A stretch of 64,000 nucleotides of DNA from Heterodontus francisci. Its lineage: Eukaryota. The translations under genes and the position numbers were made by a program. Below, piece by piece: positions 3,040 to 60,862 of the stretch (positions are counted from its first letter, which is position 1; every line of letters starts with the position of its first letter). The notes under the pieces were generated by a model. The model saw nothing but the letters and a program-made list of their open reading frames with translations, was not told where the DNA came from and did no database searches. The DNA lies in the NCBI RefSeq assembly GCF_036365525.1, contig NC_090375.1, positions 199,011,864 through 199,075,863 of the forward strand. Direction: 5' to 3'.

Positions 3040-3292
3040 GCTCACTCTCTGGGAGCTTGCTATGCCAAATTGCATTACATCAGTAACTATACTTCTAGAG
3101 TTTTGATGAAGGGTCACTGACCTGAAACGTTATCTCTGCTTCTCTCTCCACAGATGCTGCCAGACCTGCTGAGTATTTCCAGCATTTCTTGCTTTTATTT
3201 CAGATTTCCAGCCTCTGCAGTATTACTTCATTGGCCGAGAAGCTTTTGGGACATCCTAAAGTTGTGAAAGGCTCTATATAAATACAAATTCT
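3040..3292 (+). mobile_element. DeuSINE-like (SacSINE1/AmnSINE1-type) 3' part, interrupted by a Penelope pLTR (~3100-3223)
   Basis: tgggagcttgctatgccaaattg...tacttcattggc...ttttgggacatcc...gtgaaaggctctatataaatacaaatt tail; the insert matches the pLTR at 56382-56510. Confidence 0.65.
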
Positions 3293-10825: not shown

Positions 10826-11975
10826 CTTCTTTGGCAGGAAGAATAAAAAAGAAGCATATTATCTAAATGGTGAGAGATTGCAGAGCTCTGAGATGCAGAG
10901 GGATCTGGGTGTCCTAGTGCATGAGTCGCAAAAGTTTAGTATGCAGGTACAGCACGTAGTTAGGAAAGCTAATTGGATGTTATCATTTATCATGAGGGGC
11001 ATTGAATACAAAAGTAGAGAGGTTATGCTTCAGCTGTACAGGTCATTGGTAAGAAGACCACATCTGGAGTACTGTGTACAGTACTGGTCTCCTTATTTAA
11101 GGAAGGTTGTAAATGCGTTGGAGGGAGTACAGAGAAGGTTTACTAGACTAATACCTGGAATGAGTGGCCTGTCTTACGAGGAAAGATTGGATAGGCTCGG
11201 CTTGAATCTCCTGGAATTTAGAAGAGTAAGAGGCGACTTGATTGAAACATATGAGATCCTGAGGGGTCTTGACAGGGTGGATGTGGGAAGGATTAGATTA
11301 GAGATACAGCACTGAAACAGGCCCTTCGGCCCACCGAGTCTGTGCCGAACATCAACCACCCATTTATACTAATCCTACACTAATCCCATATTCCTACCAA
11401 ACATCCCCACCTGTCCCTATATTTCCCTACCACCTACCTATACTAGTGACAATTTATACCGGCCAATTTACCTATCAACCTGCAAGTCTTTTGGCTTGTG
11501 GGAGGAAACCGGAGCACCCGGAGAAAACCCACGCAGACACAGGGAGAACTTGCAAACTCCACACAGGCAGTACCCGGAATCGAACCCGGGTCCCTGGAGC
11601 TGTGAGGCTGTGGTGCTAACCACTGCGCCACTGTGCCGCCCTATGTGCCGCTCATATGTTTCCCCTTGTGGGAGAATCTCGAAGTAGGTGTCACTGTTTA
11701 AAAATAAGGGGTCGCCCATTTAAGACAGAGATGAGGAGAATTTTTTTCTCTCAGAGGGTCGTGAATCTTTGGAATTCTCTTCCTCAAAAAGCAGTGGAAA
11801 CAGAGTCTTTGAATATTTTTAAGGCAGAGGTAGATCTATCCTTGATAAACAAGGGGATGGAAGGTTATCGGGGGTAGGTGGAAATGTGGAGTAATCAGTT
11901 CAGCCATGAACTTGTTTAATGGCAGAGCAGGCTCGAAGGGTCGAGTGGCCTAGTCCTACTCCTAATTTGTATGTT
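10826..11975 (+). mobile_element. CR1 LINE 3' portion (RT C-terminus and 3' UTR), interrupted by an HE1 SINE
   Basis: ORF 10746-11315 RDLGVLVH...HLEYCVQYWSPY...RRVRGDLIETY resumes in ORF 11656-11877. Confidence 0.9.
11293..11641 (-). mobile_element. Full-length HE1-type V-SINE
   Basis: tRNA head (TGGCGCAGTGG A box, GGTTCGATTCC B box), V-domain ctgtgtggagtttgcaagttctccctgtgtctgcgtgggtttt, CR1-like tail. Confidence 0.9.
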
Positions 11976-14195: not shown

Positions 14196-17100
14196 TTTTT
14201 TAAAAATTCATTCATGGGATGTGGGCATCGCTGGCCAGGCCAGCATTTATTGCCCATCCCTAATTGCCCTTGAGAAGGTGGTGGTGAGCTGCATTTGAAC
14301 CGCTACAGTCCATGTGGAGTAGGTACACCCACAGTGCTGTTAGGAAGGGAGTTCCAGGATTTTGACCCAGCGACAGTGAAGGAACAGAGATACAGTTCCA
14401 AGTCAGGATGGTGTGTGACTTGGAAGGGAACTTGCAGGTGGTGGTGTTCCCATGTATTTGCTGCCCTTGTCCTTCTAGTTGGTAGAGGTCACGGGTTTGG
14501 AAGGTGCTGTCTAAGGAGCCTTGGTGCATTGCTGCAGTGCATCTTGTACACACTGCTGCCACTGTGCGTCAGTGGTGGAGGGAGTGAATGTTTATAGATA
14601 GGGTGCCAATCAAGCGGGCTGCTTTGTCCTGGATGGTGTCGAGCTTCTTGAGTGTTGTTGGAGCTGCACCCATCCAGGCAAGTGGAGAGTATTCCATCAC
14701 ACTCCTGACTTGTGCCTTATCGATGGTGGACAGGCTTTGGGGAGTCAGGAGGTGAGTTACTCGCCTCAGGATTCCTAGCCTCTGACCTGCTCTTGTAGCC
14801 ATGGTATTTATATGGCTACTCCAGTTCAGGTTCTGGTCAACGGTAACCCCTAGGATGTTGATAGTGGGGGATTCAGCGATGGTAATGCTGTTGAATGTCA
14901 AGGGGAGATGGTTAGATTCTCTCTTGTTGGAGATGGTCATTGTCTGGCACTTGTGTGGCGCAAATGTTACTTGCCACTTATCAGCCCAAGCCTGGATATT
15001 GTCCAGGTCTTGCTGCATTTCTACACGGACTGCTTCAGTATCTGAGGAGTCACGAATGGTGCTGAACATTGTGCAATCATCAGCAAACATCCCCACTTCT
15101 GACCTTATGATTGAAGGAAGGTCATTGATGAAGCAGCTGAAGATGGTTGGGCCTAGGACACTACCCTGAGGAACTCCTGCAGTGATGTCCTGGAGCTCAG
15201 ATGATTGAACTCCAACAACCACAACCATCTTCCTTTGCGCTAGGTATGACTCCAGCCAGCGGAGGATTTTCTCCCTCATTCCCATTGACCTCAGTTTTGC
15301 TCGGGCTCCTTGATGCCATACTCGGTCAAATGCTGCCTTGATGTCAAGGGCAGTCACTCTCACCTCACCTCTTAAGTTCAGCTCTTTTGTCCATGTTTGA
15401 ACCAAGGCTGTAATGAGGTCAGGAGCTGAGTGGCCCTGGTGAAACCCAAACTGAGCATCACTGAGCAGGTTATTGCTAAGCAAGTGCTGCTTGATGGCAC
15501 TGTTGATGACACCTTCCATCACTTTACTGATGATTGAGAGTAGGCTGATGGAGCGGTAATTGGCCAGGTTGGATTTGTCCTGCTTTTTATGTACAGGACA
15601 TACCTGGGCAATTTTCCACATTGCAGGGTAGATGCCAGTGTTGTAGCTATACTGGAACAGCTTGGCTAGCGGCGCGGCAAGTTCTGGAGCACAGGTCTTC
15701 AGTACTATTGCTGGAATATTGTCAGGGCCCATAGCTTTTGCAGTATCCCGTGCCTTCAGTCATTTCTTGATATCACGCAGACTGAATCGAATTGGCTGAG
15801 GTCTGTCATCTGTGATGATGGGGACATCAGGAGGAGGCCGAGATGGATCATCAACTCGGCACTTCTGGCTGAAGATTGGTGCAAATGCTTCAGCCTTATC
15901 TTTCGCACTGATGTGCTGGGCTCCCCCATCATTGAGGATGGGGATATTTGTGGAGCCACCTCCTCCAGTTAGTTGTTTAATTGTCCACCACCATTCACGG
16001 CTGGATGTGGCAGGACTGCAGAGCTTAGGTCTGATCCGTTTGTTATGGGATCGCTTAGTTCTGTCTATCGCATGCTGCTTACGCAATTTGGCACGCAGAT
16101 AGTCCTGGCTTGTAGCTTCACCAGGTTGACACCTCATTTTGAGGTATGCCTGGTGCTGTTCCTGGCATGTCCTCCTGCACTCTTCATTGAACCAGGGTTG
16201 GTCTCCTGGCTTGATGGTAATGGTAGAGTGGGGGATATGCCAGGCCATGAGGTTACAGATTGTGGTTGAGTACAATTCTGCTGCTGCTGATGGCCCACAG
16301 CGCCTCATGGATGCCCAGTTTTGGGTTCTGTTCGATCTGTTCGAAATCTATCCCATTTAGCATGGTGATAGTGCCACACAACACGATGGATGGTATCCTC
16401 AATGTGAAGGCGGGACTTAGTCTCCACAAGTACTGTGCGGTGGTCACTCCTACCAATACAGTCATGGACAGAAGCATCAGCAGCAGGCAGATTGGTGAGG
16501 ACGAGGTCAAGTATGTTTTTCCCTCGTGTTGGTTCCCCCACCACCTGCCGCAGACCCAGTCTAGCAGCCATGTCCTTCAGTACTCGACCAGCTCGGTCAG
16601 TAGTGGCGCTACCGAGCCACTCTTGGTGATGGACATTGAAGTCCCCCACCCAGAGTACATTTTGTGCCCTTGCCACCCTCAGTGCTTCCTCCAAGTGGTG
16701 TTCAACATGGTGGAGTGCTGAGTCATCAGCTGAGGGAGGGCGGTAGGTGGTAATCAGTAGGAGGTTACCTTGCCCATGTTTGACCTGATGCCATGAGACT
16801 TCATGGGGTCCGGAGTCGATGTTGAGGACTCCCAGGGCAACTCCCATCCTATTGTATACCACTGTGCCACCACCTCTGGTGGGTCTGTCCTGCCGGTGGG
16901 ACAGGACATACCGGGGGATGGTGATGGCAGTGTCTGGGACATTGTCTGTAAGGTATGATTCCGCGAGTATGACTATGTCAGGCTGTTGCTTGACTAGTCT
17001 GTGGGACAGCTCTCCCAACTTTGGCACAAGCCCCCAGATGTTAGTAAGGAGGACTTTGCAGGGTCGACAGGGCTGGGTTTGCCGTTGTCGTTTCCGGTGC

Positions 17101-17487
17101 CTAGGTCGATGCCAGGTGGTCCGTCCGGTTTCATTCCTTTTTTATTAACTTTGTAGCGGTTAGGTACAACTAAGTGGCTTGCTAGGCCATCTCAGAGGGC
17201 GTGTAAGAGTCAACCACATTGCTGTGGGTCTGGAGTCACATGTAGGCCAGACCAGGTAAGGACAGCAGATTTCCTTCCCTAAAGGACATTAGTGAACCAG
17301 ATGGGTTTTTACAACAATCTACAATGGTTTCATGGCCATCATTAGACTAGCTTTTAATTCCAGATTTATTAATTAAATTCAAATTCCACCTTCTGCTGTG
17401 GTGGGATTCGTACCCAGTCCCCAGAGAAATTCCCTGGGTCTCTGGGTTACTAGTCCAGTGATAATACCACTAAGCCACTGCCTACCC
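14196..17487 (-). mobile_element. Full-length ORF1-less APE-RT LINE (CR1/L2 group) with a tRNA-derived 5' head; disrupted by a few stops and frameshifts
   Basis: APE motifs (LTNIWGL, PDIVILAES, YRPP, GDFNVH, LDLVLTN, SDH) in 16305-17027; RT motifs (YRSISLL, QFGF, LDIKAAFD, GVPQGSVLGP, FADD) in 14569-15732; 3' end (ATGA)n-T5-A6; A/B boxes at 17403-17477. Confidence 0.9.
17403..17477 (-). promoter_or_regulatory. Internal Pol III (type 2) promoter at the LINE 5' end
   Basis: A box TGGCTTAGTGG (17477-17467); B box GGGTACGAATCCC (17415-17403, one mismatch to GGTTCGAATCC); second copy has TGGCATAGTGG and GGTTCAAATTCC at 45628-45701. Confidence 0.75.
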
Positions 17488-17579: not shown

Positions 17580-17953
17580 TGAGAATGGTCGCAGTGGTTC
17601 TGCTACTATGTTCGTAATTGAGAGGGAAGAAGGAGTTCGAATCCCACCTTAGCAACTGCACAATTTAAATTCAATTATTTAAATAAATTGGGAATAAAAA
17701 GCTCATCTCAGTAATGACGATGATGAAACTACTGGATTGTTGTATAAACCCATCTGGTTCACTAACATCCTTCAGTGAGGGAATCCTGCTGTACTTGCCC
17801 AGTCTAGCCTATACATGACACCAGGCCCACACCGATGTGGTTGACTCTTAACTCCTAGCAAGCCGCTCAGTTGTTCAAGAAGGTGACTGAGCATCACTTT
17901 CTCAAAGACAATTAGGGACGGGCAATAAAGTGCCCACATCACATGAATGAATA
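17580..17953 (+). mobile_element. tRNA-SINE made of the 5' ~300 nt and 3' tail of the adjacent LINE family
   Basis: A-like TGGTCGCAGTGG, B box GTTCGAATCCC, body aacccatctggttcactaa...tagcaagccgctcagttg joined to ttcaagaagg...caattagggacgggcaataaa...catgaatgaat. Confidence 0.8.
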
Positions 17954-29764: not shown

Positions 29765-29900
29765 GGCAGTGTGGGTAAACCTACACCAGATGGACTGCCG
29801 CAGTTCAAGGTGGCAGCTCACCACTACCTTCACAAGGGCAGTTAGGGACAGGAAACAAACTCTGGCCTTGCCAGAGATGCTCACATCCAGTGAAACAAAA
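29765..29900 (+). mobile_element. 3'-tail fragment of the tRNA-headed LINE family
   Basis: gtgtgggtaaacctacacc..gcagttcaaggtggcagctcaccactaccttc..agggcagttaggga, homologous to 60608-60735. Confidence 0.7.
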
Positions 29901-33149: not shown

Positions 33150-35380
33150 AACAAGATTGGATTAGATAATGACCTCATAATTAAGGCACTGCTAGGTAGC
33201 AGCAATCATAATATGACTGATATTTTACATTCAGTTTGAGGGAGAGAAGAGTGGGTCCAAGACTAGTATTTTACACTTAAATAAGGGCAATTCTGAGGGC
33301 ATGAAAGCAGAGCTAGCTAAAGTGAACTGGCAAATCAGGTTAAGGGATAGGTCAATAGAGATGCAGTGGCAGACATTTAAGAGGATATTTCAGAATAGAC
33401 AGAATGGATAAATTTCAATGAGAAAGAAAAATTCCAAGGGTGGGATCTGACATCTGTGGTTAACTAAAACCGTTAAAGATAGTATCAAACTTAAAGAAAA
33501 AGCCTATAATTGTGGAAAGATGGGAAGCAGGTTAGAAGATTGGACAGAATATAGAAAACAGCAAAGAATGTCTAAAAGATTTATAAGGAAGGTAAAATTA
33601 GAGTATGAGAAAAAGCTAGCAAGAAATATAAAAGCAAACAGTAAGAGTGTCTATAGGTATTTAATAAAGAAAAAAGTTAACAAAGTGAGCATTGATCTTA
33701 TAGAAAGTGAGTCTGGGGAATTAATAATGGATAATAAGGAGATGGCAAATGAATTGAACAGATATTTTGCATTGATCTTCACTATTGAGGATACAAGTAA
33801 CATCCCAGTATTAGCTGTAAATCATGAAATGGAAGGGAGGGAGGAACTCAAGAAAATTATAATCATCAGGGAAGTGGTACTGAACAAATTGTTGGAGCTG
33901 CAGGCTGACAAGTCCCTGGGTCCTGATGGTCTTTATCCTAGGGTGTTAAAAAAAATGGCTAGTGAGATAGTTGATGTGTTAGTTTTAATTTTCCAAAATT
34001 TCCTAGATTCGCGGAAGGCTTTGTTAGATTGGAAAATAGTGAATATAACTCCTTTATTCAAAAAGGAAGGGATACAGAAAGCAGGAAACTACAGGCCAGT
34101 TAATTTAACATCTGTCTTACGGAAAATGTTAAAAGGTATTATTAAAGACATTATAGCAGGGCATTTAGAAAAATTCAAGGCAACCAGGCAGAGTCAACAT
34201 GGTTTTGTGAAAGGGAAATCATGTTTGACTAATTTATTGGAGTTCTTTGAGGGAGTTACTTGTGCTGTGGTTGAAGGGGAACCAGTGGATGTGTTGTACT
34301 TAGATTTCCAGAAGGCATTTGATAAGGTGTCACATCAAAGGTTATTGCAGAAAATAAAAGCTCATGGTGTTGGGGATAACATATTGTCATGGATCGAAGA
34401 TTGGTTAGCTATCAGAAAACAGAGATTAGGCATAAATGGGTCATTTTCTGGTTGGCAAGATGCAGTGAGTGGTGTGCCACAGAGATCTGTGCTGGGGCCT
34501 CAACTTTTTACAATATATGTAAATGACTTAGATGAAGGGAGCTAAATATGGTTGCTAAATTTGCTGACGATACAAAGATAGGTTGGAAAGTAACTTGTAA
34601 AGAGCACATAGAGGGGCTACAAAGGGTTATAGATAGGTTAAGTGAGTGGGCAAAGACCTGGAAAATGGAGTAAATGTGGGAAAGTGTGAAATTGTTCACT
34701 TTGGCAGGAAGAATAAAAAAGCTTATTATCTAAATGGTGACAGATTGCAGAGCTCTGAGATGCAGAGGAATCTGGGTGTCCTAGTGCATGAATATCAAAA
34801 GGTTAGTATGCAGGTACAGCCCGTAATTAGGAAAGCTAATAGAATGTTAACGTTTATCGAGAGGGGAATTGAATACAAAAGTAGGGAGGTCATGCTTCAG
34901 CTATACAGGGCATTGGTGAGACCACATCTGGAGTACTGTGTACAGTACTGGTCTCCTTATTTAAGGAAGGATGTAAATGCATTGGAGGCAGTACAAAGAA
35001 GGTTTACTAGACTAATACCTAGAATGGGCAGGCTGTCTTATGAGGAAAGATTGGACAGGCTAGGCTTGTATCTGCTGGAATTTAGAAGAGTAAGAGGCGA
35101 CTTGATTGAAACATATAAGATCCTGAGAGGTCTTGACAGCGTGGATGTGGAAAGGATGTTTCCCCTTGTGGGAGAATCTAGAACTAGGGGTCACTGTTTA
35201 AAAATAAGGGGTCACCCATTTAAGACGGAGATGAGGATAAATCTTTTCTCTCAGAGGGTCATGAGTCTTTGGAATTCTCTTCCTCAAAAGGCAGTGGAAG
35301 CTGCGTCTTTGAATATTTTTAAGGCAGAGGCAGATAGATTCTTGATAACCAAGAGGGTAGAAGGTTATTGGGGGTATGTG
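33150..35380 (+). mobile_element. CR1 ORF2 (RT), 5'-truncated and disrupted
   Basis: ORFs 33520-34545 and 34646-35407: NYRPVNLTS, QHGF, YLDFQKAFDKV, GVPQRSVLGP, FADD. Confidence 0.95.
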
Positions 35381-36149
35381 GTCCAAGTTCACAGACCTGA
35401 AAGTTAACTCCACTTCTCTCTCCATAGATGCTGCCTGACCTGCTGAGTTACCCCAGCACTTGCTGCTTTGCTGCCACATACTTACCCTGCTGTGTCCCAA
35501 TGTCCTGTGAAGTTGAGATCCTCTTCTCCCACTCAAGTGCAACATTCCTTCTTGTAGGCGTGCTGCACCTGGGTGAATAATCTTAAATTTGCACATTCTA
35601 GGACGTGAGACTTAAGTAGACCATAAAAGGTATTACAGAGGTTTACAGAGAACACACTGACACAAATGGGAATGCATGGGTGTCACAGCAATGTAAATAC
35701 ATCTTTCACTAAATGTTCCTCACCAACATGTGTGTCCTTTTCTCTGTGTGAATGATGTGTGCCAGCATGTAGCGCCAATGTCACATCCCTTTGCACCACT
35801 GGTCCTTCAGAAGAGCCAACATATGCAATAACATCATTGCCATGCCACCATTACTCATGAGCGTCTCCACGGATGCAGTGACATAGACATGGGCTCAGTC
35901 AGCTGCTGCCTCTAATGGTTTATACAGGGATACTGCAGATGTGGACTGGTGCACAGCAGGTGAGCGAGGGTGATGTGTGGCTTGCAGAGCTCATGTCAGT
36001 TCCGATGGAGCAGATAGCCTTTGTCTGATAAGCCATTTCCATACATCCCGAGCTCGCTGTTAATCCTGCGTACAGAACCCGGGTGCCATCTGCCCTCCAT
36101 GTGTCTTTCATATTGTAGGTCCTCAGCGTCCTCATAGTCCGAGGAGGAA

Positions 36150-37250: not shown

Positions 37251-37492
37251 ATCAACTATGTGGCGTGCCATGGCATTGCCCATCTTGGCCATCACTCAGA
37301 GTGGCACAGCATGACCACATCTCAAGATCCTACCAGTTGAATCGATTGTCCCCATCATCCATAAAACCTTAATGCTCCTGCCCTTTCTGGCACCCTTCCC
37401 ACAGACAGGGTGCCTAGTGTGCCAGTGCCCCCTCACAAACACAGAGCGTACACTGTTAACGGAGGGATGGTACACGGATGGTACACTTGAAC

Positions 37493-38036
37493 ATAGACTT
37501 GTAGGCCTCACGAAGGATGATAATGCAAATAAAGATATTCAGAGACCATTCAAAACTTGAATTAACAGAAATTCCCCATTGTGTGACAATGACTTGGCCA
37601 TCAAGCTGCCTGCAGAGACAATGTACAGAGGGTAGGGTCATATCTGCTGTAATCTGATTACTATATACCAATCAAGAAGTGACAATGTACAGAAGATGAT
37701 GAGGTTAAACCTGACCAAAGGATTAAGGTGGACTAAACCCAATATGGAAGGAAGGAACCCTCAGAGGAGTCCATAAATGACAGGTGCTGGGACAACTCGG
37801 GGCGCACTGATTCAAGAAACCAACTTACAGTCATCAGAACACCTCAAGAAAGAAGATGGCACCACAGCAGCTCGGAAGGACACCCTATATTCTGCTGTAT
37901 AACTACTGCCGTTGGTTAAGTATTGCTTGTACATTCTTGCTGTACTTAATAAACTCTCTAGCTCAAGAAACCAGAGTTTGTACCTTGTGGGTCAAAAGTT
38001 AGTCAACATCCCACCAAAACACACAAAAATCTTACA
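37493..38036 (+). repeat. 5' LTR, first ~340 bp missing
   Basis: Roughly 90% similar by eye to 44487-45035; AATAAA at 37948; ends CTTACA. Confidence 0.9.
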
Positions 38037-44144: not shown

Positions 44145-45035
44145 TGTAGGAACTAAAGGGTTAACTTCTTCCATGCTTTATTTGTTGGATGAATCAATAT
44201 AAGTTATGATCTGATAAAACTCACATGAGATGCTATGGTTTAAATTAGAATGATTTCAAATGATGTTGCGGTTATGCTCAGGAATAGTTATACTTTGTGT
44301 AATATATCTTAATGTATTAGATTAGAACAAAGTTGTGGACTTTGTGTTTAGAATCATGTTAAATGTATATTGGCATACTGTAATTGGGAAATGGTGTTTA
44401 TTATAAAGCATAGCAGAAGCAGCGTTGCTATGAGACTGGATGTCCATTCTGCATTTCAACTAAGACAGACCCAGTCACAATAAGGGATAGACTTGTAGGC
44501 CTCACAAAAGATGATAATGCAAATAAAGATATTCAGAGACCATTCAAGACTGGAATTGACAGCAAACATTCCCCATTGTGTGAAATGACTTGGGCCATCA
44601 AGCTGTCTGCAGAGACAATGTATAGAGGGTAGGGTCATATCTGCCGTAATCTGATTATTATAAACTAATCAAGAAGGGACAATGTACAGAAGGTGAGGTT
44701 AAACCTGACCAAAGGGTTAAGGTGGATTTTAACCCATTATGGAAGGAAGGAACCCTCGGAGGGAGCCATAAGTGGCAGGTTCTGGGACAACTCGGGGCGC
44801 ACCAATTCAAGAAGAAACCAAACAGAACATCTCAAGAAAGAAGATGGCGCCACAGTAGCTTGGAAGGCAAGGACTGAGGACACCCTATATCCTGCTGTTT
44901 TACTACTTCTGTTGGTTAAGTATTGCTTGTATATTCTTGCTGTACTTAAACTATCAATCTTGATTAAGAAACCAGAGTTTGTACCTTGTGGGTCAAAAGC
45001 TAGTCAACATCCCACCTAAACAGAAAAATCTTAGA
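44145..45035 (+). repeat. 3' LTR (~890 bp)
   Basis: Starts TGTAGG after gtggggac (PPT-like); ends CTTAGA (CA mutated); shares its distal 550 bp with the 5' LTR. Confidence 0.8.
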
Positions 45036-45712
45036 ATGTCACGAGGCTTCATGGGGTCCAGAGTCAATGTGGAGGACTCCCAGGGTAACTCCCCCCTGAC
45101 TATATACCACTGATGGGTCTGTCCCGTCAGTGGACAGGACATACCCAGGGATGGTGATGGTGGTGTCTGGGACATTGTCCGTAAGTTATGATTCCGTGAG
45201 TATGACTATGTCAGGCTGTTGCTTGACTTGTCAGTGGAACATCTCTCCCAATTTTGACACAAGCCCCCAGATGTTAGTAAGGAGGATTTTGAAGGGTCAA
45301 CAGGGCTGGGTGTGCCATTGTCATTGCTGGGCCTAGGTCAATGCCGGATGGTCAGTCATGTTTTGTTCTTTTTAGACTTTTATCTAGCAGTTTGGTACAA
45401 CTGAGTGGCTTGCTAGGCCATTTCAGAGGGCATTTGAAGAGTCATCCGCATTGCTGTGGGCCTGGAGTCACACGGAGGTCAGACCAGGGAAGAATGGCAG
45501 GTTTCCTTCTCCAAAATGGCATCAGTGAACCAGATGGGTTTTTAGGACAATTTGATGATGGCTTTATGACACCATTACTGAATTCCAGATTTATTAATTG
45601 AATTTAAATTCCACCAGCTGCCATGGTGGAATTTGAACCAATGTCAAGAGCATTAGCCTGGGCCTCCGGAATGCTAGTCCAGTGACATTACCACTATGCC
45701 ACCACCTCCCCC
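45036..45712 (-). mobile_element. 5' part of the tRNA-headed LINE (head, body and APE start), cut by the ERV
   Basis: Colinear with 16790-17487, including A/B boxes and KQQPDIVILTES. Confidence 0.85.
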
Positions 45713-48611: not shown

Positions 48612-51047
48612 TAAACAAAGAGCAAAGAAAATTACAGCACAGGAACAGGCCCTTCGGCCCTCCAAGCCTGCGCCGACCCAGATCCTCTCTCTAAACATGT
48701 CGCCTATTTTCTAAGGGTCTGTATCTCTTTGCTTCCTGCCCATTCATGTATCTGTCTAGATACATCTTAAAATACGCTATTGTGCCCACGTCTACCACTT
48801 CCGCTGGCAACGCGTTCCAGGCACCCACCACCCTCTGCGTAAAGAACTTTCCACGCATATCCCCCCTAAACTTTTCCCCTCTCACTTTGAACTCGTGACC
48901 CCTAGTATTTGAATCCCCCACTCTGGGAAAAAGCTTCTTGCTATTCACCCTGTCTATACCTCTCATGATTTTGTACACCTCAATCAGATCCCCCCTCAAC
49001 CTCCGTCTTTCTAATGAAAATAATCCTAATCTACTCAACCTCTCTTCATAGCTAGCACCCTCCATACCAGGCAACATCCTGGTGAACCTCCTCTGCACCC
49101 TCTCCAAAGCATCCACATCCTTTTGGTAATGTGACGATCAGAACTGCATGCAGTATTCCAAATGTGGCCGAACCAATGTCTTATACAACTGTAACATGAC
49201 CTGCCAACTCTTGTACTCAATACCCCGTCCGATGAAGGAAAGCATGCCGTATGCCTTCTTGACCACTCTATTGACCTGCGTTGCCACCTTCAGGGAACAA
49301 TGGACCTGAACACCCAAATCTCTCTGTACATCAATTTTCCCCAGGACTTTTCCATTTACTGTATAGTTCACTCTTGAATTGGATCTTCCAAAATGCATCA
49401 CCTCGTATTTGCCCTGATTGAACTCCATCTGCCATTTCTCTGCCCAACTCTCCAATCTATCTATATTCTGCTGTATTCTCTGACAGTCCCCTTCACTATC
49501 TGCTACTCCACCAATCTTAGTGTTGTCTGCAAACTTGCTAATCAGACCACCTATACTTTCCTCAAAATCATTTATGTATATCACAAACAACAGTGGTCCC
49601 AGCACGGATCCCTGTGGAACACCACTGGTCACATGTCTCCATTTTGAGAAACTCCCTTCCACTGCTACTCTCTGTCTCCTGTTGCCCAGCCAGTTCTTTA
49701 TCCATCTAGCCAGTACACCCTGGACTCCATGCGACTTCACTTTCTCCATCAGCCTACCATGGGGAACCTTATCAAACGCCTTACTGAAGTCCATGTATAT
49801 GACATCTACAGCCCTTCCCTCATCAATCAACTTTGTCACTTCCTCAAAGAATTCTATTAAGTTGGTAAGACATGACCTTCCCTGCACAAAACCATGTTGC
49901 CTATCACTGATAAGCCCATTTTCTTCCAAATGGGAATAGATCCTATCCCTCAGTATCTTCTCCAGCAGCTTCCCTACCATTGACGTCAGGCTCACCGGTC
50001 TATAATTACCTGGATTATCCCTGCTACCCTTCTTAAACAAGGGGACAACATTAGCAATTCTCCAGTCCTCCGGGACCTCACCCGTGTTTAAGGATGCTGC
50101 AAAGATATCTGTTAAGGCCCCAGCTATTTCCTCTCTCGCTTCCCTCAGTAACCTGGGATAGATCCCATCCGGACCTGGGGACTTGTCCACCTTAATGCCT
50201 TTTAGAATACCCAACACTTCCTCCCTCCTTATGCCGACTTGACCTAGAGTAATCAAACATCTATCCCTAACCTCAACATCCGTCATGTCCCTCTCCTCGG
50301 TGAATACCGATGCAAAGTACTCGTTTGGAATCTCACCCATTTTCTCTGACTCCACGCATAACTTTCCTCCTTTGTCCTTGAGTGGGCCAATCCTTTCTCT
50401 AGTTACCCTCTTGCTCCTTATATATGAATAAAAGGCTTTGGGATTTTCCTTAACCCTGTTTGCTAAAGATATTTCATGACCCCTTTTAGCCCTCTTAATT
50501 CCTCGTTTCAGATTGCGCCTACATTCCCGATATTCTTTCAAAGCTTCGTCTTTGTTCAGCCGCCTAGACCTAATGTATGCTTCCTTTTTCCTCTTAGCTA
50601 GTCTCACAATTTCACCTGTCATCCATGGTTGCCTAATCTTGCCATTTCTATCCCTCATTTTCACAGGAACATGTCTCTCCTGCACGCTAATCAACCTCTC
50701 TTTAAAAGCCTCCCACATATCAAATGTGGATTTACCTTCAAACAGCTGCTCCCAATCTACATTCCCCAGCTCCTGCCGAATTTTGCTACAGTTGGCCTTC
50801 CCCCAATTTAACACTCTTCCTTTAGGACCACTCTCGTCTTTGTCCATGAGTATTCTAAAACTTACGAAATTGTGATCACTATTCCCAAAGTAGTCCCCTA
50901 CTGAAACTTCAACCACCTGGCCGGGCTCATTCCCCAACACCAGGTCCAGTATGGCCCCTTCCCGAGTTGGACTATTTACATACTGCTCTAGAAAACCCTC
51001 CTGGATGCTCCTTACAAATTCTGCTCCATCTAGACCTCTAACACTAA
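48612..51047 (-). mobile_element. Young 5'-truncated CR1 LINE (ORF2)
   Basis: 646-aa ORF 49138-51078 and in-frame 48691-49116 separated by one TGA; all RT motifs present, but FADD reads FADN. Confidence 0.95.
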
Positions 51048-51094
51048 GAGTGTTCTGGCGATTAAGCAAAAGGTACAAAAACTAAACAGTGATA

Positions 51095-53525: not shown

Positions 53526-56510
53526 GTTCACTGGAACACTGCAGCAATCCCAGGACAGAGATGTGAGCATGAGAACAGGGCGGGGTGTTGAAATGGCCAG
53601 CAACCGGAAGCTCGGGGTCATGCTTACAGACTGAGCAGAGGTGTTCCGCTAAGCGATCACCCAGTCTACGTTTGGTCTCCCCAATGTACACACTGGACCT
53701 TTCTCTCCAGAAGCACTGCCTCACCTTATTTCAAAGCTGTTCTACTCCGCAGCTTCATTTCATCCTTTGTCCTATCCGACACATTAACAAAAAACTTTTT
53801 TTCTTCCTTTCAGGTGTTAAGGAATGCAAGCACCAGCAGCTGATGGGGACTAATTCTCCTCCAGATCCTTCTTCCCCTTCACATCCTTCTGACCCCACCC
53901 CTTCTGATCTGACCCCTTGCCGTGTATTCACTATCCCCTCTGACCTTCCCCTCTCTGATGCTGAATGTTCTGTACTCAACAAAGGACTCAGTTTTATCCC
54001 CTTATGCTCCCACCTCAATATATTTCACGCTCGGCATGATGTTGAGCTCTTCTTCCAGTGCCTTTGCCTCTGGGCTCACTTCTTTGAACAGGTGTCCTCC
54101 CCCAGACCAGCAGACCCATTCACCCACCTCCAGCATTCCCCATCTACCTGGACCCCTCCATCAGCCATCTCAATTTCTCTCCCCCACTCACTCACTCTAA
54201 CCTGTCCCCCTCTGAACTTGCTGCACTCTGTTCTCCCAGGTCTAACCCTGACATTGTCATCAAACCTGCAGATAAGGATAGTGATGTTGTTGTCTGGTGT
54301 ACCAAGCTCTACATTGCAGAGGCTCAGCGCCAACTCTCAGACACTTCTTCCTACTTCCCCCTGGACCATGACCCCACCACCGAACATCAAGCTACTGTCC
54401 ACAGAACTGTCACTGACCTCATCTCCTCTGGAGATCTTCCCTCTACAGCTTCCAACCTCATAGCCCGCAACCCCGGACAGCCCGCTTCTACCTCCTTCCT
54501 AAAATCCACAGACAGGACTGTCCCAGCAGACCCATTGTTTCAGCCTGCTCCTGCCCCACTGAACTTATTTCTTCCTATCTTGACTCTATCTTTTCTCCAC
54601 TGGTCCAGTCTCTTCCCACCTACATCCGTGACTCTTCTGACACCCCACGTCATTTTGACAATTTCCAGTTTCCTGGCCCTAACTGCCTCCTCATCACTAT
54701 GGACGTCCAATCTCTCTACACCTCCAACCCCCCACCAGGACGGTTTGAGGGCTCTCCGCTTCTTCCTTGAACAGAGGCCCAACCAGTCCCCATCCACCAC
54801 CACCCTCCTCCGCCTGGCTGAACCTGTTTTCACATTGAACAACTTGTCCTTCCACTCCACTCACTTCCTTCAAGTAAAAGGTGTTGCTATGGGTACCTGT
54901 ATGGGTGCTAGTTATGCCTGTCTTTTTGTGGGATATGTCGAACATTCCTTGTTCCAGGCCTACTCAGGCCCCCTCCTCCAACTGTTTTTCCGGTACATTG
55001 ATGACTGTATTGGTGCCATTTCCTGCTCCTGCCCAGAACTCAAAAATTTTATCAACTTTGCTTCTAATTTCTCACCTTTACATGGTCCATCTCCGACACT
55101 TCCCTTCCCTTCCTTGACCTCTATCTCCATCTCTGGGGATAGGCTGTCTACTAATATTCATTATAAGCCCACCAACTCCCACAGCTACCTCGACTACACT
55201 TCTTCACACCCTGCCTCCTGTAAGGATTCCATTCCGTTCTCCCAGACACATCTACTCTGATGATGCTACCTTCCATGACAGCGCTTCTGATATGTCTTCC
55301 TTTTTTCTCAACCAAGGATTCCCTTGCTGTGGTTGGCAAGGCCCTCAACCGTGTCCGGCCTATTTCCCACACCTCTACCCTCACTCCTTCCCCTCCCTCC
55401 CAGAACCACGACAGGGTTCCCCCTGTCCTCACTTTCCATCCCACCAGCCTCCAGATCCAAAGGATCATCCTCCGCCATTTCCGCCACATCCAGCGTGATG
55501 CCACTACCACAGGCATCTTCCCCTGTCAGCATTCCGAAGGGATCATTCCCTCTGCGAGACCCTCATCCACTCCTCCATTACCCCCACCACCTCATCCCCT
55601 TCCCACATCACCTTCCCCTGCAATCGCAGGAGGTGTAATACCTGCCCATTTACCTCCTCTCTCCTCACTACCCAAGGCCCCAAACACTCCTTTCAGGTGA
55701 AGCAGTGATTTACTTGTACTTCTTTCAATTTAGCATACTGAATTCACTGCTCACAATGTGTTCTCCTTTACATTGGGGAGAGCAAACGCAGATTGGGTGA
55801 TCACTTTGCGGAACACCTCTGCTCAGTCCATAAGCATGACCCCGAGCTTCCGGTTGCTTGCCATTTCAACACCCCCCCCACCCCCTTCTCTCATCTCTGT
55901 CCTGGGATTGCTGCAGTGTTCCAGTGAACATCAACGCAAGCTCGAGGAACAGCGTCTCATTTACCGATTAGGCACACTACAGCCTGCCGGACTGAACATT
56001 GAGTTCAATAATTTCAGAGCAAACTTTTTTATGTTTAGTTATTTTTTCTTTTTTTCTTTCTTCTTTTTTATTTGGTTATTTTATTTTAGCTTTTTAAAGT
56101 GTGTTTAGTTTTTTTCTACTGTGCCTACCCACTGTTTCTGTTTTTCTTAATGTTTGTGGTTGGAGTGCTTTGTGCTTTACAGTCTATTCACACCCTTCCT
56201 GTACTAACACTTTGTCTTTCAGCACACCATTAACATACTGTTTGCCTTTGCTCCATGACCTTCTGGTCAGTTATTCTCTGTCACCTTGTCCTATCAACAC
56301 CTCTTTTGTTATGTCTTGCCCCACCCCCCCACACACACTTTACTTGCTTAAAATCTTTTACATTTCTAATATTTGCCAGTTCTGATGAAGGGTCACTGTT
56401 CTGAAACGTTAACTCTGCTTCTCTCTCCACAGATGCTACCAGACCTGCTGAGTATTTCCAGCATTTCTTGTTTTTATTTCAGATTTCCAGCATCTGCAGT
56501 ATTTTGCTTC
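53526..56510 (+). mobile_element. Penelope-like element (RT and GIY-YIG) with inverted 5' piece (53526-53690, minus) and 3' pLTR
   Basis: VLNKGLSFIP; KPADK; FYLLPKIH; KGVAMGTCMG; FFRYIDDCIG; YIGE.KRRLGD; pLTR hammerhead at 56382-56414. Confidence 0.9.
56378..56414 (+). ncRNA. Minimal type I hammerhead ribozyme motif in Penelope pLTR
   Basis: AGTT-CTGATGA-stem II-GAAA-CG-TT-AACT; stem I AGTT/AACT; palindromic AACGTT stem III. Confidence 0.65.
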
Positions 56511-57461: not shown

Positions 57462-60400
57462 TCATAGAATCATAACAGCACAGAATGAGGCCATTCGGCC
57501 CGTCATGTTTCTGCCGGTTCTCTACAAGAGCAACTCACCTACTTCCACTCGCCTGCCTTTTCTCTGTAACCTTGCATTTCTTTCCTCATCAGATAATTGT
57601 CCAGTTCTCTTTTGAAAGCCTCAGTTGAATCTGCCTCCACCACATACTCAGGCAATGCATTCCAGATCCAAACCATTCGATGTGTAAAAAAGGGTTTTCC
57701 TCATGTTGCTGTGGCTTCTTTTGCCAATCACATTAAATCGGTGTCCTCTGCTTCTGGATCCTTCTGCCAATGGGAACAGTTTCTCCCTATCTACTGTATC
57801 TAGACCTCTCATGATTTTGAACACTTCTATCAAATCTGCTCTCAATCTTCTTCAAGGAGAACAGCCCCAGCCTCTCCAACCTATCCACATAACAAAATGT
57901 CCTCATCCCTGGAACCATTGTGCCAAAGTTGGGAGAGCTGTCCCACAGCCTAGTCAAGCAACAGCCTGACATAGTCATACTCACGGAATCATACCTTATA
58001 GACAATGTTCCAGACACTGCCATCACCATCCCCGGGTATGTCCTGTCCCACCGGCAGGACAGACCCACCAGAGGTGGTGGCACAGTGGTATACAATAGGA
58101 CGGGAGTTGCCCTGGGAGTCCTCAACATCAACTGTGGACCCCGTGAAGTCTCATGGCATCAGGTCAAACATGGGCAAAGTAACCTCCTACTGATTACCAC
58201 CTACCGCCCTCCCTGAGCTGATGACTCAGTACTCCTCCATGTTGAACACCACTTGGAGGAAGCACTGAGGTGGCAAGGGCACAAAATGTACTCTGGGTGG
58301 GGCACTTCAATATCCATCACCAAGAGTGGCTCGGTAACACCACTGCTAACCGAGCTGGCCGAGTCCTAAAGGACATTGCTGCTAGACTGGGTCTGCGGCA
58401 GGTGGTGGGGGAACCAACACGAGGGAAAAACATACTTGACCTCGTCCTCACCAATCTGTGTCTGCAGATGCTTCTGTCCATGACAGTATTGGTAGGAGGG
58501 ACCACCGCACAGTACTTGTGGAGACTAAGTCCCGCTTTCACATTGAGGATACCGTCCATCGTGTTGTGTGGCACTATCACCGTGCTAAATGGGATAGATT
58601 TTGAACAGATCTATCAATGCAAAACTGAGCATCCATGAGGCGCTGTGGGCCAACAGCAGCAGCAGAATTGTACTCGACCACAATCTGTAACCTCATGGCC
58701 CGGCATATCCCCCACTCTACCATTACCATCAAGCCAGGAGACCAACGCTGGTTCAATGAAGAGTGCAGGAGGGCATGCCAGGAGCAGCACCAGGCATCCC
58801 TCAAAATGAGGTGTCAACCTGGTGAAGCTACAACCCAGGACTACTTGCATGCCAAACTACATAAGCAGCATGTAATAGACAGAGCTAAGCGATCCCATAA
58901 CCAACGGATCAGATCTAAGCTCTGCAGTCCTGCCACATCCAGCCGTGAATGGTCGTGGACAATTAAACAACTAACTGGAGGAGGTGGCTCCACAAATATC
59001 CCCATCCTCAATGATTGGGGAGCCCAGCACATTAGTGCGAAAGATAAGGCTGAAGCATTTGCACCAATCTTCAGCCAGATGTGTCGAGTTGATGATCTAT
59101 CTCGGCCCCCTCCTGAAGTCCACAGCATCACAGATGCCAGACTTCAACCAATTTGAGTCACTCCGCGTGATAGCAAGAAACGACTGAAGGCACTGGATAC
59201 TGCAAAAGCTATGGGCCCTGACAATATTCCGGCAATAGTACTGAAGACCTGTGCTCCAGAACTTGCTGCGCCCTAGCCAAGCTGTTCCAGTACAGCTACA
59301 ACACTGGCATCTACCCTGCAATGTGGAAAGTTGCCCAGGTATGTCTTGTATACAAAAAGCAGGACAAGTCCAACCTGGCCAATTACCGCCCCATCAGTCT
59401 ACTCTCAATCATCAGGAAAGTGAGGGAAGGTGTCATTAACAGTGCTATCAAGCGGCACTTGCTTAGCAATAACCTGCTCAGTGACGTTCAGTTTGGGTTC
59501 CGCCAGAGCCACTCAGCTCCTGACCTCATTACAGCCTTGGTTCAAACATGGACAAACGAGCTGAACTCAAGAGGTGAGGTGAGAGTGACTGCCCTTGACA
59601 TCAAGGCAGCATTTGACCGAGTATGGCATCAAGGAGCCCGAGCAAAACTGAGGTCAATGGGAATCAGGGGGAAAACCCTCCGCTGGCTGGAGTCATACCT
59701 AGCGCAAAGGAAGGTGGTTGTTGGAGGTCAATCATCAGAGCTTCAGGACATCACTGTAGGAGTTTCTCAGGATAGTGTCCTAAACCCATCCATCTTCAGC
59801 TGCTTCATCAATGACCGTCCTTCAATCATAAGGTCAGAAGTGGGGATATTCGCTGATGCTTGCACAATGTTCAGCACCATTCATGACTCCTCAGATACTG
59901 AAGCAGTTCGTGTAGAAATGCAGCAAGGCCTGGACAATATCCAGGCTTGGGCTGATAAGTGGCAAGTAACATTTGCACCACACAAGTGCCAGACAATGAC
60001 CATCTCCAACAAGAGAGAATCTAACCATCTCCCCTTGACATTCAACAGCATTACCATCGCTGAATCCCCCACTATCAACGTCCTAGGGGTTACCATTGAC
60101 CAGAAACTGAACTGGAGTAGCCATATAAATACCGTGGCTACAAGAGCAGGTCAGAGGCTAGGAATCCTGAGGTGAGTAACTCACCTCCTGACTCCCCAAA
60201 GCCTGTCCACCATCTACAGGGCACAAGTCAGGAGTGTGATGGAATACTCTCCACTTGCCTGGATGGGTGCAGCTCCAACAACACTCAAGAAGCTCGACAC
60301 CATCCAGGACAAAGCAGCCCGCTTGATTTGCACCCCATCTACAAACATTCACTCCCTCCACCACCGACGCACAGTGGCAGCAGTGTGTACCATCTACAAG

Positions 60401-60862
60401 ATGCACTGCAGCAATGCATCAAGGCTCCTTAGACAGCACTTTCCAAACCCGCGACCTCTACCAACTAGAAGGACAAGGGCAGCAAATGCATGGGAATACC
60501 ACAAGCTGCAAGTTCCCCTCCATGTCACACACCATCCTGACCTGGAACTATATCACCGTTCCTTCACTGTCACTGTGTCAAAATCCTGGAACTCCCTTCC
60601 TAACAGCACTGTGGGTATACCTACCTCACATGGATTGCAGCGGTTCAAGAAGGCAGCTCACCATCGCCTTCTCAAGGGCAATTAGGGATGGGCAATAAAT
60701 GCTGGCCTGGCTAGTGACACCTACATCCCATGAATGAATTTAAAAAAAACATTCTGGTGAATCTTTTCTGCACCCTCTGTAATGTCTTCACATCCTTCCT
60801 AAAGTGTGGTGCCCAGAACTGGGCACAATACTTCAGGTGAGGCAAAACCAGTGCTTCATACA
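57462..60862 (-). mobile_element. CR1 3' fragment (57462-57919 and 60754-60862) split by the LINE insertion
   Basis: ORF 57648-57845 RADLIEVFKIMRGLD; continuity across TSD CATT. Confidence 0.8.
57920..60749 (+). mobile_element. Second copy of the APE-RT LINE family, 5'-truncated at the APE start
   Basis: ORFs 57920-60685 colinear with 14196-17027; (ATGA)n-T3-A8 tail; TSD CATT (57916-57919 and 60750-60753). Confidence 0.9.

Follow-up and report, generated by a model that had tools for sequence, protein, structure and literature searches.

We analyzed a 64,000-nucleotide stretch of Heterodontus francisci contig NC_090375.1 (hereafter the window), focusing on copy 1, a 3292-nt non-LTR (long terminal repeat) retrotransposon copy on the minus strand (14196-17487). 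Copy 1 is a dead copy of a hugely amplified shark long interspersed element (LINE) with a single open reading frame (ORF), which encodes an apurinic/apyrimidinic endonuclease (APE) and a reverse transcriptase (RT). The LINE is probably of the L2 type, a label that we take from the literature link between the tails of shark short interspersed elements (SINEs) and L2-2_CM (PMC5499810). As described below, the 5′ untranslated region (UTR) of this LINE is the head-plus-body module of a partner tRNA-derived SINE, and its sense strand is purged of T clusters. The coordinates of copy 1 and of the other features discussed here are collected in Table 1.

The ~950-codon frame of the original prediction is present in copy 1, but it is disrupted by one frameshift and three in-frame stop codons. 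The 5′ noncoding module, which had been described as a head followed by a body of ~400 nt, totals only 345 nt. It is not a CpG island, and it contains three canonical poly(A) hexamers, AATAAA, ATTAAA, and AATAAA, at element positions 118, 130, and 342 (17145-17370). An ATG at element position 354 lies in frame 3, where it starts a frame of 47 codons overlapping that of APE. At the other end of the element, a stem-loop is predicted in the 3′ tail, with a folding energy of -28.4 kcal/mol and a z-score of only -1.39. The absence of ORF1 noted earlier is real, but the idea that it is anomalous was not supported: relatives of this LINE have single ORFs of 1040-1150 amino acids with APE and RT domains, preceded by leaders of 85-440 nt, and ZfL2-2 likewise has ORF2 only (PMC4176376). 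Inspection by eye revealed no convincing target-site duplication around copy 1.

Table 1. Parts of copy 1, its partner SINE, and other retroelements in the window
Feature	Position	Strand	Remarks
SINE-type head with A and B boxes	17395-17487	minus	element positions 1-93; box A 17477-17467, box B 17414-17404
SINE body common to LINE and partner SINE	17166-17394	minus	ends at element position 322; AATAAA at 118, ATTAAA at 130
LINE-specific 25-nt linker	17141-17165	minus	…ACCTAACCGCTACAAAGTTAATAAAAAAGG; final AATAAAAAAGG; two stop codons at end, then APE frame opens
Arg-rich, CpG-rich N-terminal stretch and APE endonuclease	16305-17140	minus	frame 2; Pfam Exo_endo_phos_2, 4e-15
Inter-domain piece	15760-16308	minus	frame 1 after frameshift; in-frame stop at end
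RT domain	14569-15732	minus	Pfam RVT_1, 4e-37; relatives 32-47% identical
C-terminal piece	14260-14562	minus	begins past a stop codon
3′ tail common to LINE and SINE	14207-14283	minus	~75 nt; predicted stem-loop around AATAAA, then ATGAATGAAT
Copy-specific T5A6 end	14196-14206	minus	first T is part of shared ...GAAT
Partner SINE	17586-17953	plus	LINE 5′ module (to element position 322) plus LINE 3′ tail; head-to-head with copy 1
Copy 2, older headed 5′ fragment	45036-45711	minus	cut at 45035
Copy 3, 5′-truncated	57918-60749	plus	94% identical to copy 1
Tail-only fragment of LINE or SINE	29766-29894	plus	
Control LINE	33520-35407	plus	8 T4 runs; pentamer ratio 1.12; RT 35% identical to copy 1
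Control LINE (CR1)	48612-51078	minus	12 sense-strand T4 runs; pentamer ratio 0.97; RT 31% identical to copy 1

As originally proposed, copy 1 begins with the A and B boxes of a predicted internal promoter for RNA polymerase III (Pol III). Box A (TGGCTTAGTGG) is an exact fit to TRGCNNAGTGG. Box B (GGTACGAATCC), which is separated from box A by 52 nt, has one mismatch, and the family-majority letter at 17411 restores an exact box B (GGTTCGAATCC). In copy 1, copy 2, and the partner SINE alike, the element starts 10 nt upstream of box A.

The suggestion that this head is native to the LINE, rather than a chance SINE insertion, held up. Copy 2 is 79.6% identical to copy 1 over element positions 1-700 and has unrelated flanks, but its 5′ end falls on the same nucleotide (GGGTAGGCAGTGGC against GGGGAGGTGGTGGC), and it carries the same 25-nt linker and the same junction between the SINE module and APE. 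An independent contig from a DNA sequencing run (X1) spans the module/LINE junction in yet another copy. Because independent copies share both the 5′ end and the APE junction, the head belongs to the replicating LINE lineage. The 3′ part of copy 2 is lost, as we did not find it on the far side (37440-37500) of the inserted retrovirus-like element.

Near-identical copies of the family are spread over several samples or species, since 54-80% of the exact 31-mers of this stretch are held by each of five differently coded organisms (runs X1-X16). Gene models of Heterodontus francisci contain exonised fragments with 74-79% amino-acid identity to the LINE.

The partner SINE beside copy 1 consists of the first 322 nt of the LINE joined to its last ~70-105 nt. 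It matches element positions 75-322 at 81% identity and then positions 3205-3245 at 88%. Thousands of contigs from four sequencing runs join 17166-17205 straight to 14268-14273; these are SINE forms, made up of the LINE 5′ module and the last ~70 nt. As the SINE next to copy 1 has a longer piece of tail than the contig-borne forms, there are at least two junction variants. All SINE variants and the LINE break at the same end of the 5′ module, ...AGTTGT. One possibility is that the SINEs descend from the headed LINE by internal deletion; another is that template jumps onto the 3′ terminus of a single module RNA gave rise to both the LINE and the SINEs. Copy 1 itself is not a SINE, as it is 3.3 kb long and encodes APE-RT, but it carries the SINE module.

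We then considered runs of T, since Pol III terminators consist of T-rich sequence. The original prediction held that the sense strand lacks an internal TTTT despite many runs of A, and our counts agree: the 3292 nt contain a single run of four or more T (T4+), the T5 at 14206-14202, compared with 15 A4+, 8 C4+, and 7 G4+ runs, leaving none in the 3281 nt that precede the terminal T5. Mononucleotide shuffles gave an expectation of 5.1 T4+ runs (P for zero, 0.006) and synonymous-codon shuffles gave 2.7 (P for zero, 0.03-0.04).

Wider measures of T clustering, obtained by comparing 2.7-2.9 kb of coding sequence with synonymous shuffles, revealed a strong deficit. The coding part contains 7 T3+ runs where 15.0-15.6 were expected (P<1/3000), and all seven are in-frame TTT codons; across codon boundaries, TTT was never observed, against an expectation of 12.7. 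The number of codon junctions that read T|T was 10, compared with 27-29 expected. Pentamers with at least four T, which comprise canonical and non-canonical Pol III terminators, numbered 2 instead of 13.1. Runs and clusters of A, C, and G occurred as expected under the same shuffles.

The purge was then compared with 70 other LINE ORFs in total. From metagenome contigs we collected 80 loci with 32-47% RT identity to copy 1. At 68 of them the ORF is intact and measures 1.5 kb or more, and neither a tRNA nor a pair of A and B boxes lies at the 5′ end of any of these 68. Every one of the 68 contains at least 3 T4 runs, compared with 0 in the copy 1 LINE. The T3 z-score, about -3.2 in the copy 1 LINE, ranges from -2.5 to +3.1 in the relatives; the T|T junction ratio is 0.34 compared with 0.95±0.17 (minimum 0.55); the observed/expected ratio for T-rich pentamers is 0.15 compared with 0.99±0.13 (minimum 0.69); and their density is 0.73 per kb compared with at least 12.9. 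The two control LINEs of the window, whose sense strands are 12-14% C, have a normal T-run content, and the CR1 element is as rich in sense-strand T4 runs as had been reported. T depletion is accordingly neither explained by codon usage nor shared by the headless relatives, and it is specific to T, to the sense strand, and to this LINE family.

Other causes of the purge were considered and rejected. Avoidance of splice signals does not account for it, since pyrimidine tracts are not depleted, nor does avoidance of premature polyadenylation, since there is no shortage of poly(A) hexamers or of GU-rich stretches.

The T runs that survive are of a particular kind. Copies 1 and 3 have five T3 runs in common, all isolated (V-V-TTT-V-V, with no T within 2 nt), as well as one TTGTT; all remaining T clusters in these copies are private changes of one copy. 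The only TTTT of copy 3, at 58599, where copy 1 reads TTTCG, was confirmed to be a private C>T change in copy 3. Moreover, none of the 40 best-supported family-majority letters (0/40) creates a T4 run. In assays of human Pol III, an isolated T3 is a nearly inactive terminator, while T3VT, TVT3, and T2VT2 cause partial termination (PMC3141230). Thus, nearly all surviving T runs are of a kind that does Pol III no harm.

The terminal T5 is present in copy 1, as predicted, but a role for it as a built-in terminator is not supported. The end of copy 3 reads GAATTTAAAAAAAA, and both the tail fragment at 29766 and the neighboring SINE lack a T run there. Family copies in the sequencing runs depart from the reference after ...ATGAATGAAT and continue into A-rich tails. 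Termination by Pol III would need these tails or flanking DNA, as it does in most SINEs.

We tentatively favor, with a little less than even confidence, an explanation in which Pol III, recruited by the internal A/B promoter, makes the full-length RNA for retrotransposition, and selection keeps canonical and degenerate terminators out of the unit. TFIIIC and TFIIIB would bind the A and B boxes of the LINE, and the Pol III start would lie ~10 nt before box A, just where it lies on the SINE. With T4 and degenerate T-rich terminators purged from the 3.3-kb sense strand, the polymerase could read to the end of the element and would terminate in DNA flanking it or in its variable A/T-rich tail. The RT encoded by the LINE would then recognize the shared 3′ tail with its predicted stem-loop and copy the RNA into new sites. 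Lineages that gained a T cluster would yield truncated RNA and no full-length progeny, and the purge would be maintained. The architecture, the shared 5′ end, the nesting of the SINE, and the specific T purge are observed; initiation and read-through by Pol III and recognition of the tail by RT are what we infer from them. The three poly(A) hexamers in the 5′ module would be awkward for an RNA polymerase II (Pol II) mRNA, and we count them in favor of Pol III.

How the protein would be made is a separate question. In an attractive version of the proposal, Pol III makes the templates and occasional Pol II transcripts give the protein, which acts in trans as it does on the SINE. We consider it unlikely that the Pol III RNA, uncapped and with a 5′ triphosphate, serves as both template and mRNA; its translation would have to begin at a non-AUG codon shortly after the SINE module, and this module would be a cap-independent leader.

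Several points weigh against transcription of this LINE by Pol III. Among them is the limited force of the T4 counts. The original prediction was that selection had removed Pol III terminators; the purge of T clusters fits this, but the lack of TTTT is weak evidence on its own, as dinucleotide shuffles gave an expectation of 2.0 T4+ runs and a P for zero of 0.12. Composition as the sole cause was nevertheless rejected: such shuffles make zero T4 unremarkable, but the deficit of TT and of T clusters survives synonymous shuffling and the controls. The shortage of T|T junctions is greater than avoidance of terminators would require, so a further force may act on UU. As for the promoter, ARAGORN found 0 tRNA genes in the head, Rfam found no tRNA match there even at E<=10, and the predicted fold of the head has no cloverleaf. 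A tRNA identity of the head was therefore rejected, and "tRNA-like" can be applied only to its A and B boxes, as is the case for many old SINEs. The terminal T5, not being conserved, was rejected as the terminator of the family. Only two 5′-complete copies, copy 1 and copy 2, entered the comparison. Contigs from RNA libraries are 3′-biased and uninformative on RNA starts, strand, and level. Between the stop codons that end the module and the conserved start of APE (17027-17140, minus strand) there is no in-frame ATG; in relatives of the LINE, unlike in copy 1, a Met occurs at a median of 6.5 codons past the upstream stop. Finally, we know of no natural Pol III unit of ~3 kb, and Pol III RNAs are uncapped and make poor mRNAs; Gunnery and Mathews reportedly found in 1995 that Pol III transcripts are translated only poorly.

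The element could instead be an ordinary Pol II LINE that acquired its 5′ UTR from the SINE module by template switching or copy-choice, an explanation we regard as somewhat doubtful. The head would then be a passenger or would act indirectly, perhaps as a TFIIIC-bound boundary or anti-silencing element, and T depletion would have some other origin, for instance an RNA nuclease directed at UU, an RNA-binding factor, or biased copying by the RT. Pol II transcribes the LINEs that have been studied to date, the element has to be translated, and contigs from RNA libraries cover the ORF; the A-rich tails that end family copies downstream of an AATAAA, and a depletion of T|T junctions greater than terminator avoidance needs, also fit a Pol II transcript. 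Yet this explanation does not account for a purge that is specific to T and to one strand and that neither the 68 relatives nor two co-resident LINEs show, nor for the fact that the surviving T3 runs are precisely those that are inert as Pol III terminators (PMC3141230). It must also accommodate three poly(A) hexamers within the first 345 nt and a 5′ module that is not a CpG island, and an intact A/B promoter would recruit Pol III anyway.

The T purge is likewise left unexplained if the headed copies are recurrent dead-end chimeras, formed when RT jumps from the 5′ end of a headless LINE RNA onto the 3′ end of a tailless SINE-module RNA, with a headless element as the true master. Template jumping is the accepted route to the birth of SINEs (PMC5499810, PMC5786205), and the LINE and two SINE variants do join at the same acceptor end, ...AGTTGT. 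However, copies with 20% divergence, as well as the bridging contig, have an identical 25-nt linker and junction, both 5′-complete copies in the window are headed, and among the loose ends listed none points to another upstream sequence. We consider this origin very unlikely. We find it hardly probable at all that the head is a signal for 5′-end processing, such that the LINE is co-transcribed from host promoters and its RNA freed by tRNA-processing enzymes, in analogy to the 5′ ribozymes of R2, RTE, and L1Tc. The 5′ ends are precise and shared, and ribozyme-defined 5′ ends of LINEs are known (PMC5786205), but the head is not tRNA-like for ARAGORN or for Rfam (E<=10) and folds without a cloverleaf, the copies start ~3 nt upstream of the expected tRNA +1, and the T purge again has no place in this scheme.

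Parts of this arrangement have precedents. The Deu-SINEs SacSINE1 and LmeSINE1, with L2-2_CM, provide the case of a tRNA-headed SINE of cartilaginous fish that carries the tail of an L2 LINE (PMC5499810); going by their description, SacSINE1 and L2-2_CM have only the tail in common, whereas here the SINE head and body are also found at the 5′ end of the LINE. A short partner made of the 5′ and 3′ ends of a LINE is also seen in ingi/RIME, L1Tc/NARTc, and the bipartite derivatives of RTE and Vingi elements (PMC5786205), but the 5′ modules shared in those pairs are Pol II promoters or ribozymes rather than a head with A and B boxes. In a systematic survey of Repbase, RTE and Vingi were the only clades whose LINEs had 5′ parts in the bodies of SINEs (PMC5786205). 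ZfL2-2 and UnaL2, ORF2-only L2 elements of the stringent type, resemble our LINE in having a single APE-RT ORF and SINE partners, and their RT recognizes a 3′ stem-loop of the kind predicted here (PMC4176376); ZfL2-2 is competent for retrotransposition (PMC4176376); unlike our LINE, they have conventional 5′ UTRs, with no SINE-type head or T purge reported.

With tRNA-derived SINEs, which are Pol III units of type 2, the LINE shares internal A and B boxes, a start ~10 nt before box A, the lack of an internal T4, and, as we propose, termination in variable downstream DNA. Its length, however, is about tenfold that of such SINEs, and it codes for an endonuclease and an RT of its own. In U6/L1 and other template-switch chimeras, sequence from a Pol III-derived RNA is also joined 5′ of a LINE, but these are one-off, dead-on-arrival products with variable junctions (PMC6789731), whereas here one fixed junction recurs in diverged copies. 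In line with the original prediction, full-text searches for a Pol III-driven or SINE-headed LINE yielded no described example.

In the textbook division, LINEs are Pol II mRNAs and SINEs are Pol III parasites that have only the tail of a LINE. If our proposal is correct, this element breaks that division, and Pol III can drive an autonomous retrotransposon. The LINE, with a SINE nested inside it, would also provide a direct model of how SINE heads and bodies arise, and would help to explain the enormous load of the LINE/SINE pair in shark genomes. It would offer a natural test of the maximal length of a Pol III unit and of whether uncapped RNAs can feed a retrotransposon. Should the Pol III RNA be the mRNA as well, the element would be the first natural case of a Pol III unit that encodes protein in an animal genome, and the SINE and the LINE would be one lineage, with the SINE as the internal-deletion form of the LINE. 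Even if Pol II is the source of the mRNA, the purge of T clusters constrains the sequence strongly and lacks an explanation.

We also made several observations on neighboring and related sequences. Closer shark copies, among them the 83%-identical P0016 and the Heterodontus hits, fall outside the 80-locus comparison set. On one of the metagenome contigs, an exact A/B-box pair (TAGCTCAGTGG...GGTTCGAACCC; L015:6405-6459) lies downstream of a LINE relative, not at its 5′ end, and is probably a tRNA gene or SINE adjoining the relative. The window itself contains another tRNA-type SINE at ~11400-11660 on the minus strand (GGCACAGTGGCGCAGTGGTTAGCAC...GGGTTCGATTCC), which has an exact box B and, ~120 nt in, an internal TTTT. 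Elsewhere, three consecutive long ORFs without a Pfam match (292, 241, and 146 amino acids) occupy 53585-55700 on the plus strand, which is 37% C in this region.

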